Shown piece by piece: positions 50,944-62,338 of a DNA stretch of 64,000 nt (position 1 is the first letter of the stretch; each line of letters begins with the position of its first letter). The translations under genes were made by a program, and so were the position numbers. This DNA comes from Phaeosaccion multiseriatum (lineage: Eukaryota; Protista; Ochrophyta, other classes). The stretch covers positions 1,674,001 through 1,738,000 of the forward strand of contig OZ218956.1 in the NCBI GenBank assembly GCA_965112735.1, read 5' to 3'. Under the pieces are notes generated by a model. It searched no databases and had not been told where the DNA came from. It worked only from the letters and a program-made list of their open reading frames with translations.

Positions 50944-52112
50944 ATGGAGGTCTCCTCGGGATCACAGGTCGGGGCGGATAAGACAGGGATCGAATCAGGG
51001 CCTGCGGGATCAGGTGCAGGAGTAGATGTGGAAGAGAGAGGGGGAGGAGGAGCAGCAGGAGCTGCGGTCGAAGCTGGGACAGGACGGGCATGGAAGAGAA
51101 GGAGAAAGAAGGAAAAAAAAAAAGAGAATCGAAAGAAGCAGCAGGGCAAGAAGGGGGTAGATCAACACAAGCGCTGCAAGTACTTTTTGCAGGAAAAGGG
51201 CAGGGTGTGCAGAATGGTTCGAAAAGAGGAACAACCCTACTGTGGGGCCCACATGCATCTGGCAGAAGAGGGGGGGGAAGACCACATTCCATGTCCGGTG
51301 GACCCTTCTCACACTGTTAGTCGGTTTATGGTTGAGCGTCATGTCCTGGTCTGTCCACGTCGTATGGAGAAAATGAAGATGGAGAGTGCGCCTTGGTACA
51401 GAAAAGGCATCAACTCTGGCAGAGGGGAGACACAGGGTCAGGGGCCGGGAAGTGAGGGAGAGGAACGAGCCAAAGTCTTCGCGCAAGGATTGGGGCCCGA
51501 CGCAAGCAGCCGGGCTTTCATGCTCTCCATTGTCAGCCGAATCAACAAAGCGTACGAGACTCACGTAGCACCACCACCACCCGCAAGAACAGGGCAAGGG
51601 GTGCGAGAGGAAGGATCGGGAGAAGGCCCAATGTACGGAGCCGGAGGAGCGTCTACTCTGGGAATAGCTCCTGGAGTGGCGCCTCCTTCCACGGGCGTAG
51701 GGTATCACCAACAGGAGCAGGAGGAGGAGGAGGAGGAGGAAGAGGAGAAGCAGGAGGATGGGAACGCGTCAGAGCAGCCGGATGGGCCCCTCTCTTCGCA
51801 TGTGGAGCAGCTCAAGCCCTCCGAGTGCGAGGGCCTGCTGGCAGACGCCAGCACCAAGAGCTTACGCCATGTGCAGCAGGTTTGTTGTTGTTGCAGTTGT
51901 TGTATATTGTTTGTTGTTGTTGTTGTTGTTGCTGTTGTTGTTGTTATTGCTTTAGTTTTTGTTGCTGTTGTTGTTGTTGTTGTTGCTGTTTTCATGTCCT
52001 TGTTGTTATTGCTGTTGTTATGTTCTTGCTGTTGTTTTCATGTCCTTGTTGTTATTGCTATTGCTGTTGCTGTTGTTGTTATTGTCGTTGTTGTTGTTGT
52101 GTTATTGCTGTA

Positions 52113-52143
<31 letters not shown>

Positions 52144-54372
52144 TTGTTGCTGTTGTTGTTGTTGTTGTCTTCATGTCCTTGTTGTTATTGCTGTTGTTAT
52201 GTTGTTGCTGTTGCTGTTTGGCAGATGCGTGTGGAGGATCGGTACTTCCCTCACTCATGGCTGCTCATGGCTGCTCATGACTGCCGTCTCTGCTCCTCTT
52301 GCCCCCTCTCACCCCCCCCCCGCATTATCCCTTCCTTGTGCAGCAAGTGAGCATTCTTGGCCACATGAATCGTCGGGGCCTCTTCCCCTCCCTCCACAGT
52401 GCACAGCCGCCCCACCCCCCCGGCGGTGCGTTAGACTTGTCTCGTGCTCTAGTCTCTCTCTTGTCCTCTCCCTCCTGCGTAGATTGTGAACACGCCGAGT
52501 GTGGGGTGTTTCTCTTGATGTGTGCTCCTTCCCCTCTTTCATCGCTGGGCCTCTATTATTCAGCCCCCCCTCCCCCCCCCAACCGCTCTCTCTTTTCTCT
52601 CTCTCTGTCCCCCTCTCCCTATCTTTCTCCCTCCATCTCTCCCTCTCTCTCTCTCTCTCCCTCTCTTGCCGGAAAGGCGGTATCTCTTACGTAGAGATGG
52701 GTGCGGGGAGAGGCAAGCTCGCTTTGGCGCTGGCTCTCACGTCCAAGAGTGAAGCAGATATTGTCCTGGTGGAGCGGAGTGGTCTAAGGAACAAGGCGGA
52801 TATACAGTTTCGTCAGCTTCAGAGCGAGGGCTTTCAAAGGTGGGAGGGGGGGAACAGCAGCAGCAGGAGGAGGAGGAGGAGTGGGAAGCTCTCGTCTTCA
52901 CACGTACGCAAGCCCTTCCTTCTGATGCTGCCCCCCACTGCTGCCTATACTTCCACTGCCCCTCATCTGGCCCGTCCCTGATATCCCCCTCTCCCCTCTC
53001 TTGACCACGACTGCCAAAGAGTGAAGACGGACATCCGCGACCTCTACTTGAGCAGCGTGCCCCTCCGGCACAGGCAGGTGGTGGCCATTGGCAAGCACGT
53101 ATGCGGCGTAGCCACGGACCTAAGTCTTAGGGCCCTTCTCAACCTCCAGCGCCACTCGTCACCAGCCGTTTCAGAATCAACTCCAGTGTGTGATGAAAAT
53201 GGTGCAGGACATGTTGGCAGTGCAAGTGCTTCTTCGGCCGGTGGGGCGGGCGCTGCGTCAGCAGAGGAGCGGCGCAAGAGGGAGGTGGGGGGCGTGGCGA
53301 TTGCAACTTGTTGTCATCAGCACTGCAACTGGTCAGACTACACAGGCAGGGTGAGTGAGTGAGTGAGTGAGTGAGTGAGCGAGGGAGGGAGGGAGAGAGG
53401 GAGGGAGTGAGGCAGTGACTCAGTGAGTGGGTGTGTGCGTGTATGAGTGCGTGCGTGTGTGCGTGTAGGAGTGCGTGCGTGCGTGCGTGCCTGCGGGGGG
53501 GCAGCAGGGAGGCAGGAGGGAGCGCGATGGAGCGGGCCCACGGGCCGATCTTTATCCCTCCTCATGCTGCCACACAGCTGGGAGACAAAACTCGCAGAAG
53601 CACTTTTGTTGCTGTTGGCGTCTCTCACTCTCTCTCCTCGTGCTCCTCTTTCTCCTCCTCCCCAACCCCCTCCGGCTCCCTCCTCTCTCCATGCTCGTCT
53701 CAGGACTTCTTAGAGCAGCAAGGCATCGATGAGTCCGACTTTGCCGTGATGAAACGCCTCACGTCGTGGGCTGTGAGCTTGGACCAAGGGGAGAGGCGTG
53801 GAGGAAATGAGGACGACGAGCACGCCGGAGCAGCAGCAGTCCAGGAGGAGGAGGAGGAGGAGGAGGATGAGAAAGATGAAGATGTGGCGAGCACTCGTGG
53901 GAAATTGGAAGCAGGGGGAAACACAGCAGTGGCAGACACATCAGCAGCAGCAGTAGAGGAAGGTGAAGATTCGGCCGCTGGCACCGGAGAGCAAGAAGAA
54001 AGCACCAAGAAGAGGGAAGGAGGAGGCGTGGAACAGGTAGAGGGAAACGGGCATGGAGAAGAACGCACAGAAAAGGGAGGGCGAGAAAGCCGCAACACCA
54101 GCACCACTGCCACAAGCAGCAGTAGGCCAAAGTCAGTACGACCAAGCACCGGATTGATGAAGTGTGCCTCTGCCGCAGGCCTCTCCAGGGCAGAGAGGAT
54201 CGAGGTGGGGCGGCGTGCCAAGCGCCTCATCGACCACGGTCGGCTGGTCTTCCTGCGGCGAGAGCTCGGCCTGGAGGGAGAGCTTGTGCACTATGTCAAC
54301 AAGAGCTCCACTTTGGAGAACTGCCTGCTCATGGCCTGGCCGGCACAGCAGCAGCAGGGCCAGGAAGGGTAG
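50944..54372 (+). CDS. TRM13: tRNA:m4X 2'-O-methyltransferase TRM13 (exons 50944-51879, 52344-52425, 52677-52839, 53020-53350, 53704-54372)
   Basis: CCCH finger CKYFLQEKGRVC...YCGAH, CPVDPSHTV...HVLVCP, RHVQQQVSILGHM, YVEMGAGRGKL, GKHVCGVATDLSLR, IATCCH, KRLIDHGR, LENCLL. Confidence 0.95.
51880..52220. repeat. (GTT)n intronic microsatellite with three embedded TTCATGTCCTTGTTGTTATTGCT units
   Basis: Units near 51991, 52037 and 52170. Confidence 0.9.
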
Positions 54373-54781: not shown

Positions 54782-57265
54782 TTATTCTGCCTTGAAAACC
54801 ACACGGCCTTCGTTGCTGTCCTCCCCCGCCGTCGCGGGGAGTAGGAGCTCTTCGTTGAGGTACGCCAGCACTGCAGGCTTGAGCACGCTGACGCCATCAG
54901 CACTGCCGCGGCCTCGCCCGGTGATGACAGTGATCTGTCCCTGCACCCTCTCCACTTGGAGAGCGTATCGAAGGGCGGCCTTGGCGGTCCACTCCGAGTG
55001 CTCGTGCAAGTCCATCACCTTGCCTTCATCGCTCTTCTTCCAATGTGACAATACACTCTGTGCGACGGCCTCTGCGTACAAGCCGTCAGCCGAGCTCCAT
55101 TGCTCGTGCAGGGACAGAACGTCGATAGCAGCTCTGTAGGTTACTTCGTTGGGTTCAATGCCGTCTGCGCGCATCAGCTTCAACAAGTCAAGGGCCCTAC
55201 CATACTCTCCTGCCTTGCCGCAAGCAGTAATCGCAGAGCTGTACGAGACTTCACCAGGCTGAATGCCTTCCCTACGCATCTCCTCCAGCAAGTCTAGCGC
55301 CTTCTCGTGCTCTCCTGCATTGCCACAAGCACTAATCGCAGAGCTGTACGAGATTTCATTGAGTTGAAGGCCTACGCTGCGCATCTCCTTCAACAAGTCA
55401 AGCGCCTTCACCTGCTCTCCTGCCTTGGCACAAGCATCAATCGCAGAGTTGTACGTGATTTCATTGGGCTCAATGCTTTCCCTGCGCATCTCCTGCAGCA
55501 AGTCAATCGCCTTCTCATGCTCTCCTGACTTGGCACAAGCAGTAATCGCAGAGCTGTACGAGATTTGATCGGGTTTGAGCCCTTCCTCTCGCATCTCCTT
55601 GAGCAGGTCCAGCGCCTTCTCGTGCTTTCCTGCGTTGCCACAAGCACTAATCGCAGAGCTGTACGAGATTTCATTGGGCTGAACTCCTTCCCTGCGCATC
55701 ACCTTCAGCAAGCCGAGGGCCTTCTCATACTCCCCTGCCTTGGCGCAGGCATCAATCGCAGAATTGTACGAGATTTCATTGGGTGGAAATTCTTCCCTCC
55801 CCATCTCCTCCAGCAAGTCAAGCGCCTTCATATGCGCTCCTGCCTTGGCGCAAGCATCAATCGCAGAGTTGTACGATCTTGCGTTGGGTTGAAGCCCTTC
55901 CGTCCGAATCTCCTTGAACAAGTCAAGCGCCTTCTCGTGCTCGCCTGCCCTGCCACAAGCAGAAATCGCAGCATTGTAGGAGATGTGATCGGGTTGCAGG
56001 CCCTCTGTCCGCATCTCCTCCACCAAGTCAAGCGCCTTCTCGAACTCTCCGTCCTTTCCACATGCGTCAATCGCAGAATTGTACGAGATGACATTGGGTT
56101 GAAGGCCTTCCCTCCGAATCTCCTTTAGCAAGTCAAGCGCCTTCTCATGCTCTCCTGCATTCCCACAAGCCTCAATCGCAGAGCTGTAAGAGATGACACC
56201 GGGCTCAACCCCTTCCCTCCGCATCTCCTCCAGCAAGCCAAGGGCCGTCTCGTGCGCTCCTGCCTTGCCACAGGCAGATATCACAGAATTGTACGAAATG
56301 TTATCGGGCTTAAGGCCTACCCTGCGCATCTCCTCCAGCAAGGCAAGCGCCTTCTCGTACTGGGCCGTCTTGCCACATGCAGAAATCGCAGAGCTGTACG
56401 AGATGACATCGGGTTGAAGCCTCTCCCTCCGCATCTCCTCCAGCAAGCCAAGCGCCTTCTCGTGCTGCCCTGCCTTGCCGCAGGCAGTAATCGCAGAATT
56501 GTAAGAGATAACATCGGGTCGAAGGCCTTCCCCCCGCATCCCCTTTAACAAGTCCAGGGCCTTCTCGAACGCTCCTGCATTGCTGCAAGCAGCAATCGCA
56601 GAGTTGTACGTGACAACGTCGGGTCGAAGGCCTTTCGTCTGCATCTCCACCAGCAAGTCAAGCGCTTTCTCGTACTGCCCAGCCTTGCCACAGGCAGAAA
56701 TCGCAGAGCTGTACGTGAAATCGTTGGGTTGAAGGCCTTCCCTCCGCATCTCATCGAGAAGGGCAAGCGCACCCTTCCATCGCCCAGCTTTGCCCACCGC
56801 AGTAATGGCAGTCGTATACAAAATTACATTCATCTGAACCCCGTCTACTTTCGCCCCCTCAAGCGCTTTCGCAACCCCCCTCCAGTCGCGCATGTTCCCA
56901 AGCCTCTGCAGCACTTTGTTCAACTGCACTTGCTGATCTCGTTGGCTGCCACCCCCCCCGCCTTCTCGCTGCTGCTGCCCTCCCGTGTTAGTAAGATTGC
57001 CACCCGGGGCTCCATGGAGGTGGAGCGAGCGAGTCCCCGATCGCCGCGGAACATGCACCGCCCCTGTGAGGAAGGAGTTTTGTTTTTCCACAGGAGTGTG
57101 CTGTGCAGGCGAAGAGGTGGATGACGGAGCAGAAGCCCATCTTCCCCACGAGCTTTCACATCCACCTGCAGCACACAGCCCTCTTCCACCCCCTCCTCCT
57201 GGGTAAATGAATCCCGTCCCGGTGCTTCCGCTATTGGCCGTCATCCAAGGGGGGCATGGCCCCAT
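54782..57265 (-). CDS. Intronless P-class PPR protein with C-terminal SMR domain (16 canonical and 2 degenerate PPRs)
   Basis: 35-aa repeats xISYNSAIxACGKAGxxEKALxLLxEMRxEGLxP(N/D); SMR motifs MDLHEH, ITVITGRG, LKPAV, NEGRV; first ATG at 57265. Confidence 0.95.
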   Translation of the reverse strand: MGPCPPWMTANSGSTGTGFIYPGGGGGRGLCAAGGCESSWGRWASAPSSTSSPAQHTPVEKQNSFLTGAVHVPRRSGTRSLHLHGAPGGNLTNTGGQQQREGGGGGSQRDQQVQLNKVLQRLGNMRDWRGVAKALEGAKVDGVQMNVILYTTAITAVGKAGRWKGALALLDEMRREGLQPNDFTYSSAISACGKAGQYEKALDLLVEMQTKGLRPDVVTYNSAIAACSNAGAFEKALDLLKGMRGEGLRPDVISYNSAITACGKAGQHEKALGLLEEMRRERLQPDVISYSSAISACGKTAQYEKALALLEEMRRVGLKPDNISYNSVISACGKAGAHETALGLLEEMRREGVEPGVISYSSAIEACGNAGEHEKALDLLKEIRREGLQPNVISYNSAIDACGKDGEFEKALDLVEEMRTEGLQPDHISYNAAISACGRAGEHEKALDLFKEIRTEGLQPNARSYNSAIDACAKAGAHMKALDLLEEMGREEFPPNEISYNSAIDACAKAGEYEKALGLLKVMRREGVQPNEISYSSAISACGNAGKHEKALDLLKEMREEGLKPDQISYSSAITACAKSGEHEKAIDLLQEMRRESIEPNEITYNSAIDACAKAGEQVKALDLLKEMRSVGLQLNEISYSSAISACGNAGEHEKALDLLEEMRREGIQPGEVSYSSAITACGKAGEYGRALDLLKLMRADGIEPNEVTYRAAIDVLSLHEQWSSADGLYAEAVAQSVLSHWKKSDEGKVMDLHEHSEWTAKAALRYALQVERVQGQITVITGRGRGSADGVSVLKPAVLAYLNEELLLPATAGEDSNEGRVVFKAE

Positions 57266-57371
57266 TTTCCTTTCCAAACACGAATGTGACGCTGTTGTCC
57301 ATCGTGACAGCAGACTAAGTCAACGACATAAGTCAACAATCTCAAAGTAACGGCACAAATATATAATAACA

Positions 57372-60215
57372 ATGAGGAGAGCCAAGCGAGCCACGGTGGC
57401 GCCAGCGAAGCACTCGCCGAAGAAGGGAGGAGGTTCTACTGCGGCTGCTTCCATCAGCGCCGCGCCTTCATATGACTGCGCCGATGGGATGAACCAAGAA
57501 GGGCAGGAGGAGGTGGAGGAGGAGGAGGAGGAGGAGGAGGAGGAGGAGGAGGAGGAGGAGGAGGAGGAGGAGGAGGAAGAGGAGGAAGAGGTGTGGATAG
57601 GCGGAAAGCTTCGACCCAAGCTTCAAGATCCGAATAACTATGATGGCAGTGATAGATGGTGAGTGCGACGCTGATTAGGGTCTACGTTGTGCCTCTCCCA
57701 CCTTTCTCTGCTAACCTCCTCTTGCCATAGTCTTGGCCCTTTAAACCCACTATTACCATGCACACATCATCTCTCCAGGTACGAGCCGGGATCTGTAGAG
57801 TGGAACGCTTCGCTATTGCCCCTAGATCTCTCCTCCGCGTGCTCTCACATCGCCCGGGGGGGTAGCGGCCACCATGGCAAGAAAGCGAAGCGTCCATTGC
57901 AATACTCGGGTAAGAGGAAGCACAGCAGAAGAGGGGCCTTTTCTATATCATCTCACTCTGTTGCTCACATAGGTACGCACACCTACCCGCACATGAATTA
58001 CAGGACTATGGCAGTGCTTTTGTCCGTGCTGGGCGGCCGCCCGCAAGGAGTCCATCATACACAGGGAAGAGTCGACAGTTCCGGACTGCAGCCCCTCAGC
58101 CTGCTGTTGCTGTATCACCAACTGTTGCGGCTACTGCGGCTCTTATCAAGCCGCACCGTCTGGGATCTCTCCTCGGCAGCCGTACAGCAGCGAGTATGAC
58201 GTCGAAAGCGAGTCCTGCCGGAGGCACTGCTGCGCTCAGCGACCACACCCATCCCCATTGCTGTCTCAGACGATGAAGCGAGACGAGGAGTGGGGGGGGC
58301 AGCAGCATGGTGGTGAGGCGCGGGGAGGCGGCAGGCAGGGTCGGGAGACTGAGGGTGGGCAGACGAAGGCCACAGCAGGAGACGACGAGAGTGGGACCCC
58401 GCAGCCGCTGGACTCGGGCGGCAACAAGAAGAATACAAAGGAGGACAAGAGTGACGAGAAAGCCGCCTGGAAGCTGCCCGCCTGGGCCGCTCGTCCGTGG
58501 CTAGCCTGCAATCTGGGACCGCGCGGCTGGCAGCGATGCCACATGACGTGTCTTGTACCGTGCCTGCTACCTTGTGTGGCGGTGCGAGACCGACGGGCCC
58601 TGAGAAGGGCCTATCCCTTCAACAAGCACTTCATTACCTCATGCTGCTGCACCGAGGTGGGGTAGGATGGACGTGTGAGCGTGCGTGGCGTGGGGTGGAA
58701 TCCTGTTGCGGCCTGGCCTGAATGAGAAGACTCTGAAAGGGATGGGAGAGGGCGAGAGGATAGACAACGTGATGCGAGCCAAAGTCACAGACAGCGATCG
58801 AACCAGCTCGTCCGCCTCCAGGCTACTTGGAGGGTCCTCATCCAAGTACGATTCTCTAACGCCGCCCCTCCTCTCTCTCTCCCTCTCTCTCTCTGTGTGT
58901 GTCGCTCTCTCACTCTCTCTCGCTCACTCGCTGGCTCGCATGCTGTTTTCTCTATCTTTCTCTGTTCCCCCAATTGTACTTGCTCTATACGGTGCCCTAT
59001 TTTGCTCCCATAGGAGGCCAAAGCCTGCCTATGCTGCCCGTGCGCACTTCGACAGGTACGTGTGTGCGTGTGTGCGTGCATGCCTGTGTGCGTGCGTGTG
59101 TGCCTGCGTGCGACCCCCCCCCTCGCCACTTGCTTACTCACTCTCGCGCCCCCCGCCCCCCGCCCCCCACCCACACATACACATACACCGCCCCTCTCCT
59201 CTCTCTCTCAGCACCACCTCTTCCTGGTGGAGAGGCGAGCGCTTGAGCTGCAGGAGAAGGAGGACGTCTTTGAGGACTATGAGCATGGGCATATGGGGGG
59301 AGGAGGAGAAGGAGGAGGAGCAGGAGGAGACCTTGACGAATCTGACGCAGCAGGGCTTCGAATACGCCGCGCCATCGTCGCCAGACGGAGAAGGCCCGGG
59401 CTGGGGCACGGCCCATTGCTACACTACTCTGGACACTCCAATCGGAGATGGACTGCGCCTGTGGGGAAGGGGCCGGCGGTGCCTATGTTTAAGGTAGGTG
59501 GGGGCAGCGAGGGGCTCCAGCGGTGCACAGTCCACGGCGCTCCCCTACTTCTTTCTTCCTTCTGTGGCGGCGAGGCTCTACGTGTTCTTGTTGTGTGTTC
59601 TGTGGTGATTGCTGTTGTGAATTGTATTGCTGCCTGCACACAACCCCCCTTTGCTCATCTGCTGCTATGCTACCATCCCCCCGACTCCCTCAGGTGGTGC
59701 TGCTTGGGTCTCACGGAGTGGGCAAGACGTCCCTCGTGGACATGCTTGTGCACAAGCCTTTCTATGCGTCGTATGTGGCGGACACAAAACTCAAGACGGC
59801 AGTGAGGATGTACCAACTTCGCACGGAGGAAGGGGAGGAGGAGGAGGACGACGACGACGAGGAGGAGGAGGACGACGACGACGAGGAGGAGGAGGACGAG
59901 GCGGGGGGGGAGACTAGGGGAGGAGGTAGAGGAGGAGGGGGAGGAGGGGAGGCCTTCCCGTCCGCTTGTCTGCACTTGCACGACGTCCCAGCATCCACCA
60001 ACTTAGATCGGTACGTGGGTACGGGTCGGCCGGGGTGAGCGCGCCACTGTTAACGCGGCGAGGATAGCGTGCAGCACCCCTCTCACCTCTGCAGCCAACT
60101 CTCAAGGCTCATGCGCTGCATCAACCTGCGGCCAGAGGACCATCGCTAAACAAGACTCAGACACTCACACGGTCCGACTTGTCATTTGCCTCTTTCTAAC
60201 GTGAGCATGGAATGT

Positions 60216-60286
<71 letters not shown>

Positions 60287-60978
60287 TGTGCGTGTGTGCG
60301 TATCTCTGTGTGCGTGCGTCGCCCACAGGCGGCCGGTCTGGCTGGAGGGTTGCGACGCTGCGCTGCTTCTCATGGACCTTGATGATCGCAAGGACGTTGA
60401 AACCGTCAAGGTGAGCGGGAGGACCGACGGGAGGACCGAGGGGCGGGGGCGAGGAGAGGAGGCGAGGGGCGGGGGCGAGGAGGGGGGAGAAGGGCAAGGG
60501 GGTGGTCTTCTAGACAAGTAGAGGCATATGGAGGCGTATCGAGGCCTGGGACGATACTGTGGAGGCTCTGTTGATCCGCCAGCTGCCTGCCCCCAACATT
60601 TTCCAACGACGTGTCCGCCGGTGTCCTCTCTCTCTCCCTCCCTTCCTTCCTTCCTTCCTTCCTTCCTCCCTCCCTTCCTTCCTTTCTTCCTTCCTTCCTT
60701 CCTTCCTTTCTTCTTTCTTTCTTTCTTTCCTTCCTTCCTCCCTCCCTCCCTCCCTCCCTCCCTTCCTTCCTTCCTTCCTTCCTTCCTTCCTTCCTTCCTT
60801 CCTTCCTTCCTTCCTTCCTTCCTTCCTTCCTTCCTTCCTTCCGTCCTCCCTCCCTCCCTCCCTCCCTTGCTGTCCCTCGCTGTCATAGGGCTGGTACTAC
60901 GAGCTGGAGAAGCACAGCGCAGGGAACATGCCCGCCGTGTGGATTGTGGGCACCAAGACGGACCTCGTGCCCCCGACA

Positions 60979-61029
<51 letters not shown>

Positions 61030-61446
61030 TGTGTGTGTGTGTGCGTGTGTTTGTGCGCGTGTGAGAGAGAGAGAGAGTAAGAGTGTGTGTGTGAGGGCGT
61101 GCACTCGCGAGTGGGTGGGTGTGGGCATTGCAGCTGGTACCCCGAACAACTTAAAAGCAAATCATATCATCACGGATACTAAGACAAGTACCTCGTGTGT
61201 GTGTGTGTTTCTGTGCGCGCGGGTGTGTGTATGTGTGTGTATGCGCGTGTGTGATTTTTTACCTGCGTGTCGCGTGGGTACTTTGGTTTGCACAGGTGCT
61301 TTTTCCTGCGGGAGATTTGCGAGTGGGCGGGCGCGAAGGGCGTGGGCGTATGCATGACCTCGGCCTTCAGCGGAGAAGGCACCACACGACTGCTGCACCA
61401 AGTGGTGAGGGCGGCCTTCAGACGACATGGGACGACTGGGCGATAA
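57372..61446 (+). CDS. PLAC8-like Cys-rich domain fused to a Ras-superfamily small GTPase domain (exons 57372-57658, 57779-57909, 58004-58656, 59014-59055, 59212-59493, 59694-60010, 60329-60410, 60889-60980, 61296-61446)
   Basis: PLAC8-like W..SL...CFCPC...RRALRRAY...CLCCPCALRQ; then FKVVLLGSHGVGKTSL (G1), LHDVPA (G3), WIVGTKTD (G4) and MTSA (G5). All 8 introns are GT-AG and phase-consistent with no stops. Confidence 0.8.
60640..60865. repeat. (CCTT)n/(CCCT)n intronic microsatellite
   Basis: Directly visible. Confidence 0.95.
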
Positions 61447-62338
61447 AGCAACAATGATCCAACAATGATCCAGCCTGACTGCCTAAGTAAACCCAACCCT
61501 GCGGCTCAACATGCCACTGGTGGTGTAGTGCCTTTATAAAAATATAAAAATCAGCCACAAACAACTGTGTGGAGGAGGCTTCCTTCCTCCCTTGTGCGGC
61601 CACTGTCTGTCATTAAGTCATTCGCACCGTTCAGAGAGCAAGCAGTGCCTACAGTACCCATAGCTTGTATGCCTCCGAAGTGCGACATTGAAAACGAGAC
61701 CCCCTGCACTTCGCGCTACGTAGCAAGGTCCTGCCTTCCTCCCTTCCGTACACATACACACACACACAGGTTACACACTCTCTCCCCCTCTCGTCCCTTC
61801 GCTGCTGTGAGCTCTGCCTCCATCTCCCCGCTCCCAACCTCCTCAGCCGCCCTCCTCTCTCTCTCTCCTCTATGTACAAAAGCAAAGTGTGCTTGAACGG
61901 CTGACGGCACCCCCCCTGCCCCGGTCACAACTGTCGCAAGTTCAGCATAGCATAGTCAAGCTCTCCCGAAGGACTCCTGCAGCTCTTGAGAGACACACAC
62001 TGCCTTGCCCTTCTTCGCTGGCAGCCCTTCCTTCCGTCCGTCCGTCCGTCCGTCCGTCCTTCCTTCCCGCCCGCCTACTGGACAGTTCACTCCCACCTCC
62101 ACCCGCTGCCACCCTCCCTCCACGTTTCGAGGGGAGGAGAAAGAGCACGGTGTCGAACAGAGGCGACAACTCGCGGTCCTTGTGGTGAAGATGGATCCAA
62201 TGCGCGGCGTCCATTTCCATCCCCCTTCCCCTATTCCGAGCCGGATGCTTGCCGTCGGTAGCGCTGTTGCCACTTCTGCAGGTGATGAAACCTTTCCTTC
62301 CATGCCTCCCCTCTCGTCTCTCGTCCCCCCCCCCCATC

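Follow-up and report, generated by a model that had tools for sequence, protein, structure and literature searches.

In the stretch of 64,000 nucleotides analysed here (hereafter the window), taken from contig OZ218956.1 of the ochrophyte alga Phaeosaccion multiseriatum (positions 1,674,001 to 1,738,000 of the forward strand), nine plus-strand exons between window positions 57372 and 61446 splice in phase into one open reading frame (ORF) of 678 codons. In this locus, which we call the putative PLAC8-GTPase gene, a PLAC8-like Cys-rich region of soluble type and a Ras-fold domain are most likely, if unproven, truly fused. It is probably a new combination of the domains of two known families. 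Nucleotide binding by the Ras-fold domain is probable, whereas normal switching and hydrolysis are not. We give a probability of about 0.55 to the full explanation, that is, one gene for a 678-residue multidomain protein working as proposed in the next paragraph.

According to this explanation the protein would begin with an acidic disordered N-terminus, continue with a Cys-rich non-transmembrane PLAC8-like region and a linker of ~95 residues, and end in a G domain of the Ras superfamily, all encoded by a single mRNA. The G domain retains the motifs that hold the nucleotide, namely the P-loop GSHGVGKT, the guanine-specificity motif TKTD, and TSA. The sequence DVPA-S stands in the place of DxxGQ, and the domain therefore lacks the catalytic glutamine as well as the glycine that senses the gamma-phosphate through its backbone. 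We infer from these motifs that guanine nucleotide would be bound and poorly hydrolysed, with no Ras-like switching, and that the domain may serve as a nucleotide-dependent scaffold, i.e. as a pseudo- or atypical GTPase. Since the protein has neither a C-terminal Cys for prenylation nor an N-terminal Gly for myristoylation, its targeting to a membrane or a partner would have to depend on the N-terminal half, where the most plausible means are cysteine clusters that are S-acylated or bind metal.

Gene model and the two halves of the protein

The gene model was rebuilt from the letters of the window, and this reproduced exactly the single in-phase ORF of nine exons given in a preliminary description of this DNA, whose product has 678 residues, together with all the motifs quoted in that description (CFCPC, RRALRRAY, CLCCPCALRQ, GSHGVGKT, DVPA, TKTD, TSA and the acidic run). 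No stop codon or frameshift interrupts the nine exons (Table 1) before the TAA at 61444-61446, and the eight introns are all of the GT..AG type, with pyrimidine-rich 3' ends and consistent phases. The window is eukaryotic, has a G+C content of ~57% and contains short introns rich in microsatellites. There is no in-frame ATG in exons 2 and 3 ahead of the PLAC8 motif, and therefore the start codon must come from an upstream exon. In exon 1 the next in-frame ATG after M1 is codon 40, and the poly-Glu run of this exon is encoded by a (GAG)n array at 57505-57591.

The PLAC8-like region contains 26 Cys among 236 residues. The signatures reported for the PLAC8 family include CC/CLxxxxCPC, CCXXCAL and QxxRELK (PMC12467093). 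In our protein a CPC-type motif, an R..LR..Y stretch and a CCxCAL.Q motif follow each other in the order of the family, in imperfect form. For CC/CLxxxxCPC we found two near-matches, neither of them exact: GLWQCFCPC at residues 140-148 (its CFCPC being residues 144-148, encoded at 58015-58029) and CLVPCLLPC at residues 322-330 (58549-58575), with a hydrophilic stretch at ~58234-58530 between them. RRALRRAY follows at residues 336-343 (58591-58614). The C-terminal signature reads CLCCPCALRQ-HHLFLVERR, of which CLCCPCALRQ (residues 362-371) is exon 4 minus its first four residues, and its CC-x-CAL spacing is one residue short of CCxxCAL. That such a motif should fill an exon of its own of 42 nt, with AG and GT exactly at the borders, is hard to ascribe to chance. 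The motif inspection of the translated ORF revealed no QxxRELK in the PLAC8-like region.

Regarding the profile searches, Pfam (24736 models, E-values up to 10) was scanned with exon-sized pieces, and the PLAC8-like domain is itself split over exons 3-5. Against PF04749, the PLAC8 family, whose gathering score is 34.4 bits, exon 3 scored 16.4 bits (E 0.018), which is sub-threshold for a single-exon query, and its first 77 amino acids alone scored 18.1 bits (E 0.005), with residues 143-216 aligned to profile positions 18-85 of 101. PLAC8 was the only Pfam family reported for the Cys-rich piece, and in the ESM Atlas, of the 40 clusters closest to exon 3, 34 carry PLAC8 (top score 0.91). The C-terminal piece of exon 3 alone gave neither a Pfam match nor a usable Atlas match; exon 3 gave only noise in the PDB and nothing relevant in NCBIfam, and its AlphaFold2 model computed without an alignment was unusable (predicted local distance difference test, pLDDT, 39.6).

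The preliminary description had seen here one PLAC8-like domain with a large insertion. The likeness to PLAC8 stands, on the sub-threshold Pfam scores and the Atlas clusters; the single domain with an insert does not stand alone, as the region may be one domain interrupted by a hydrophilic stretch of ~100 residues, or else a pair of degenerate modules. The second option is suggested by the alignment of residues 143-216 by themselves to most of the positions of the profile. Compared with each other as an internal repeat, the two Cys-rich modules showed no significant similarity (Smith-Waterman score 36, shuffle mean 33).

No transmembrane-like segment was found in this region, where the 19-residue Kyte-Doolittle mean reaches at most 1.14; the highest such window of the whole protein (1.26) lies on the beta-1 strand of the GTPase. 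In this respect the region is closer to those Cys-rich PLAC8 proteins that are soluble than to the PCR/FWL transporters of plants with their two helices. A nucleotide-gated (pseudo)GTPase regulating cation flux, which had also been suggested, consequently has little in its favour, because the two transmembrane helices by which those transporters are defined (PMC12467093) are both absent from the region.

In the C-terminal half the G motifs are G1 GSHGVGKT (residues 470-477), G3 DVPA (562-565), G4 TKTD (620-623) and G5 TSA (650-652), with hydrophobic beta-strands ahead of G1, G4 and G5. The distance from the G3 Asp to G4 is 58 residues (59 in H-Ras) and that from G4 to G5 is ~30 (29 in H-Ras), whereas the interval between G1 and G3 is ~45 residues longer than in Ras owing to an acidic/Gly run at residues 510-552, which by its position lies in the beta-2/beta-3 hairpin. 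The full chain of G motifs at Ras-like spacing did not appear in any of 200000 shuffles of residues 466-678, a test that was designed post hoc with the motifs already known. The peptide of exon 7 is by eye colinear with what we take to be the Rab sequence ...YRGADCCVLVFDVT....

Exon 6, one of the four exons of the G domain, scored 20.5-21.0 bits against Roc (PF08477; E 4e-4 to 6e-4) and 16.6 bits against Ras (PF00071; E 6e-3), both sub-threshold, as the gathering scores are 27 and 21.6 bits respectively. Its best G-protein match in the PDB was Rab7 (E 0.0085), over VLLGSHGVGKTSLVDMLVHKPFYASY, which covers the P-loop and helix 1. One PDB E-value was lower (0.0046), that of a prenyltransferase subunit whose match stems from the acidic/Gly insert. 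The nearest Atlas clusters of the P-loop piece are Ras/Roc, so that Pfam, PDB and Atlas agree in pointing to the Ras superfamily for the putative G domain. Exons 7, 8 and 9, taken singly, found nothing in Pfam or the PDB, exons 8 and 9 being too short for such matches, and a tblastn search of the P-loop piece against phage records for template GTPases returned P-loop noise only.

The domain had been described as an atypical GTPase, and the features given for this hold: G3 reads DVPAS (residues 562-566) instead of DxxGQ, with Ala for Gly and Ser for Gln, an acidic insert precedes it, and the C-terminus RAAFRRHGTTGR (...RRHGTTGR) has no Cys after residue 648 and no CAAX, CC or CxC motif, which excludes prenylation. 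As had been suggested, the Cys-rich domain may stand in for prenylation as the membrane anchor. TKTD is not atypical, since Rac-type GTPases normally carry TKxD as their G4, and therefore only G3 is truly aberrant. In H-Ras the substitution G60A holds the protein in the inactive state 1 and drastically impairs its GTPase activity (PMC4867591).

Table 1. Exons of the putative PLAC8-GTPase gene, an ATG within one of its introns, and the neighbouring genes (window positions)
Feature	Positions	Strand	Description
Exon 1	57372-57658	+	Start M1, basic N-terminus, 25-residue poly-Glu run; codon log-odds +0.48 in model frame
Exon 2	57779-57909	+	In-phase junction to exon 3 completes the Gly of ...SGLWQCFCPC; coding score neutral (-0.01)
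Exon 3	58004-58656	+	Cys-rich PLAC8-like region; open over 217 codons
Exon 4	59014-59055	+	42 nt; its product EAKACLCCPCALRQ is the CCx(x)CAL..Q signature of the PLAC8 C-terminus; AG and GT exactly at borders
Exon 5	59212-59493	+	282 nt, 94 codons; linker; last codons ATG TTT AAG (59485-59493, M-F-K) complete the GTPase beta-1 start
Exon 6	59694-60010	+	G1 P-loop GSHGVGKT (59706-59729), switch I region, acidic/Gly insert (~59826-59954), degenerate G3 DVPA (59982-59993)
Exon 7	60329-60410	+	Remainder of switch II and beta-4 (...WLEGCDAALLLMDLDD...); coding score +0.30
Exon 8	60889-60980	+	beta-5 and G4, VWIVGTKTDL; TKTD at 60952-60963
Exon 9	61296-61446	+	G5 TSA (61357-61365), C-terminal helix, stop TAA; tail without Cys
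In-frame ATG in intron 5	59667-59669	+	Yields MLPSPRLPQ-VVLLG... if the GTPase is separate
PPR-SMR gene	54782-57265	-	Intronless; 16 PPR repeats and Smr domain; head-to-head with the PLAC8-GTPase gene
TRM13 tRNA methyltransferase gene	50944-54372	+	At least 2 large exons: CCCH and CHHC zinc fingers on one, methyltransferase domain on another

The junction between the two halves

Whether the two halves belong together depends on the interval between exons 4 and 6. This interval has a single strong donor, at 59494 (AAG|GTAGGT), and two strong acceptors, at 59212 and 59694, with pyrimidine shares of 0.95 and 0.80 respectively. The exon that they delimit has a length divisible by three (282 nt, 3 x 94) and is open in the frame fixed by exon 4. 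Its codon log-odds are +0.21, where the off-frame 95th percentile is 0.085 and windows of known ORFs average 0.27. The junction 59493|59694 restores F-K-V-V-L-L-G, and a lysine followed by hydrophobic residues is the usual beginning of beta-1 in Ras, Rab and Rho proteins. Furthermore, the frame of the PLAC8 C-terminal signature meets its first stop at 59803, within the P-loop exon, with or without removal of intron 4, and therefore a separate PLAC8 gene would have to overlap the coding region of the GTPase in another frame.

Thus, with regard to the PLAC8-GTPase fusion proposed earlier, the reading frame is indeed shared by both halves, and their existence as one gene is the most economical model, from which a single transcript would follow. 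We regard this single-gene reading as likely.

Two introns of this interval have open frames. Intron 4 (59056-59211), which with its 156 nt preserves the frame, has no stop codon in any of the three frames. In intron 5 (59494-59693) two of the three frames are open, and its retention would yield a PLAC8 protein ending at 59803, without the GTPase. This product would include a hydrophobic stretch (...LRVLVVCSVVIAVVNCIAAC...). It may be due to chance in a T-rich sequence or may represent an alternative isoform.

Relatives, alternative readings and significance

The searches for relatives were negative. The word-index search gave 139 candidates with exon 3 and one with the P-loop piece, none of them significant, and an exhaustive phmmer search of exon 3 against 1.84 billion representative proteins gave no match at E <= 0.001. 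The metagenome scans with exon 3 and with exon 6 confirmed no locus, and within the 64-kb window there is no second PLAC8 or GTPase gene. As a calibration, we considered the neighbouring intronless PPR-SMR protein, which matched only proteins that are 32-50% identical to it, the best of them including brown algae and dinoflagellates, and no copy of itself. A protein of this kind without close matches means that the proteome of this alga and of its close kin is missing from the database, and therefore the blank searches are weak evidence.

Several of the results weigh against a single functional fusion gene. With no relative of either half found in these searches, a comparison can demonstrate neither that the halves are fused nor that they are under purifying selection, and the scores of PLAC8 as well as those of Ras and Roc fall under the Pfam gathering thresholds on the pieces scanned. 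Just ahead of the P-loop there are in-frame ATGs at 59485 and 59667, and a GTPase of its own could begin at either of them. Genes are closely packed in this compact genome, with neighbouring start codons 106 bp apart and convergent stops 410 bp apart. Stop codons are scarce in the window (0.019-0.025 per codon), where 46% of the codon positions lie in open stretches of at least 94 codons; an open linker of 94 codons is therefore weak evidence, and little can be concluded from the length of an ORF by itself. In the 3' half of exon 5 the codon score is neutral (-0.16 to -0.01). Finally, the splice joints were not found in public runs, where the locus is present in four runs of a single sample, all of them DNA contigs passing through the introns.

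Some of these points would fit two adjacent genes of the same strand wrongly joined, that is, a PLAC8-like gene (exons 1-4/5) followed by a stand-alone atypical small GTPase starting either at the ATG at 59485 (MFK|VVLLG..., in which case its first coding exon would have just three codons) or at the ATG in intron 5 (MLPSPRLPQVVLLG...). Both ATGs are in frame and give an N-terminus of textbook length for a small GTPase, and the very short intergenic distances, the ease with which long open frames arise in this window and the neutral 3' half of exon 5 all speak for it. Nevertheless, we consider the two-gene reading doubtful, because the frame of the PLAC8 signature without a stop before 59803 would force an overlap with the first exon of the GTPase in another frame, and because exon 5 is bordered by the best splice sites of the interval and has a frame-preserving length, the sole other candidate acceptor (59385) being weak (pyrimidine share 0.65). 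If there were two separate genes, the locus would simply hold an ordinary divergent PLAC8 gene beside an ordinary divergent small GTPase.

The two other rivals accept one frame and question what it encodes. The Cys-rich part might not be a PLAC8 homologue at all, being instead an unrelated low-complexity Cys-rich extension of a divergent GTPase whose likeness to the PLAC8 motifs is convergent. This would agree with Pfam scores of 16-18 bits, far under 34.4, with the missing QxxRELK and the missing transmembrane helices, both of which plant PLAC8 proteins have, with the lack of any PLAC8 protein in the phmmer search, with the C-terminal piece that alone is blank in Pfam and Atlas, and with the unusable fold model (pLDDT 39.6). 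However, it would leave unexplained that PLAC8 is the sole family reported up to an E-value of 10 among 24736 models, that 34/40 of the Atlas neighbours are PLAC8, and that three signatures occur in family order (xLxxxxCPC or CLxxxxLPC; R..LR..Y; CCxCAL.Q), the last one filling its own exon, and therefore we find it unlikely. The locus could also be a young chimeric or decaying one under little or no selection, with an intact frame and a protein devoid of conserved function, in which case the degenerate motifs and the repeat expansions would be drift. The absence of relatives among the 1.84 billion representative proteins (exon 3) and in the metagenome scans, the degenerate G3, three coding runs of microsatellite type and the sub-threshold PLAC8 match are all compatible with decay. 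We hold it to be very unlikely, since nine exons and 678 codons have been kept without a stop or frameshift, and G1, G4 and G5 are intact at the correct spacing with the hydrophobic strands that precede them; moreover, the absent relatives say little, as the PPR-SMR neighbour likewise lacks close kin in the databases (32-50% identity).

Going one step beyond the fusion gene that we favour, its product might represent a lineage-specific GTPase-like class in which a soluble Cys-rich PLAC8 module replaces the lipid tail for targeting to membranes or partners, and a locked or slow G domain couples nucleotide occupancy to the role of PLAC8 (metal handling or S-acylation-dependent membrane binding). 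We judge this quite unlikely; were it true, it would provide the first functional partner physically tied to a PLAC8 domain. To our knowledge there is no agreed molecular mechanism yet for the PLAC8 proteins (onzin, FW2.2, PCR, MCA). If PLAC8 is indeed fused in nature to a switch domain that binds nucleotide, this would point to a partner activity open to direct testing. Among the GTPases it would mean, if true, a Ras-fold domain without a lipid anchor and without the G3 glycine and glutamine, which is carried by another module instead.

Neighbourhood and comparison with known systems

The start codon of the PPR-SMR gene and the ATG at 57372 are separated by only 106 bp (57266-57371). A TATATAATAA element lies at 57360-57369, 2 bp upstream of the latter ATG, and it may serve the PPR-SMR gene of the minus strand, or else the plus-strand gene may truly start at codon 40. 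On the other side, the stop codon of TRM13 is 410 bp away from the convergent stop of the PPR-SMR gene, and therefore the genome is compact. Regarding the microsatellites of the PLAC8-GTPase introns, there is a (TG)n array in intron 6 (60213-60316), CCTT x58 in intron 7 (60637-60868) and (GT)41 in intron 8 (60981-61063). The public short-read contigs break at each of these three arrays, and 60674-60840 is uncovered. At 58002-58168, 59839-60005 and 61676-61842 the contig depth rises to 5-15 times the local level, with loose ends that are not the same from contig to contig. This points to brief stretches of low complexity (CTG/GCT-rich, GGA-rich and CA-rich) repeated throughout the genome and not to copies of the PLAC8-GTPase gene.

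As for known systems, our full-text literature searches found no paper on a PLAC8 domain combined with a small GTPase and no described G-domain fusion with a PLAC8 partner. The Cys-rich half shares with the PLAC8/PCR/FW2.2-CNR/MCA/cornifelin family (PF04749) the CPC-type N-terminal motif, the R..LR..Y stretch and the C-terminal CCxCAL.Q, whereas it differs in its sub-threshold score, in lacking the transmembrane helices and QxxRELK, in a motif span of ~228 residues instead of ~100, and in the G domain attached downstream. In the MCA proteins PLAC8 occurs within larger proteins, but we know of no GTPase among these.

With the small GTPases of the Ras superfamily (PF00071/PF08477) the C-terminal half has in common G1, G4 and G5, the hydrophobic strands and the Ras spacing, and among solved structures Rab7 matches best, over the P-loop and helix 1. 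It departs from them in its DVPA-S G3, in the 45-residue acidic/Gly insert, in the absence of CAAX or CC and in the ~465 residues ahead of the domain; the motifs of the Rab family are not recognisable in it by eye.

A small G domain inside a larger protein that is localised by another module, and not by a C-terminal lipid, is found in Miro, SR-beta, Rab44/45-CRACR2A, RJL and Roco, where the partner is a transmembrane helix, an EF-hand, DnaJ or LRR/COR instead of PLAC8. The atypical GTPases and pseudoGTPases (EhRabX10, RGK, Rnd, RhoH and AAGAB), which we compare by description and not by sequence kinship, likewise keep the Ras fold with degenerate switch or catalytic motifs, although none of these named examples is joined to a PLAC8 domain. 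In EhRabX10 G3 is altered (DTQDME) and G5 is changed too, next to a G4 that reads TKAD (PMC8514894), and the pseudoGTPase concept under which our G domain might be placed has been laid out in PMC12490416.

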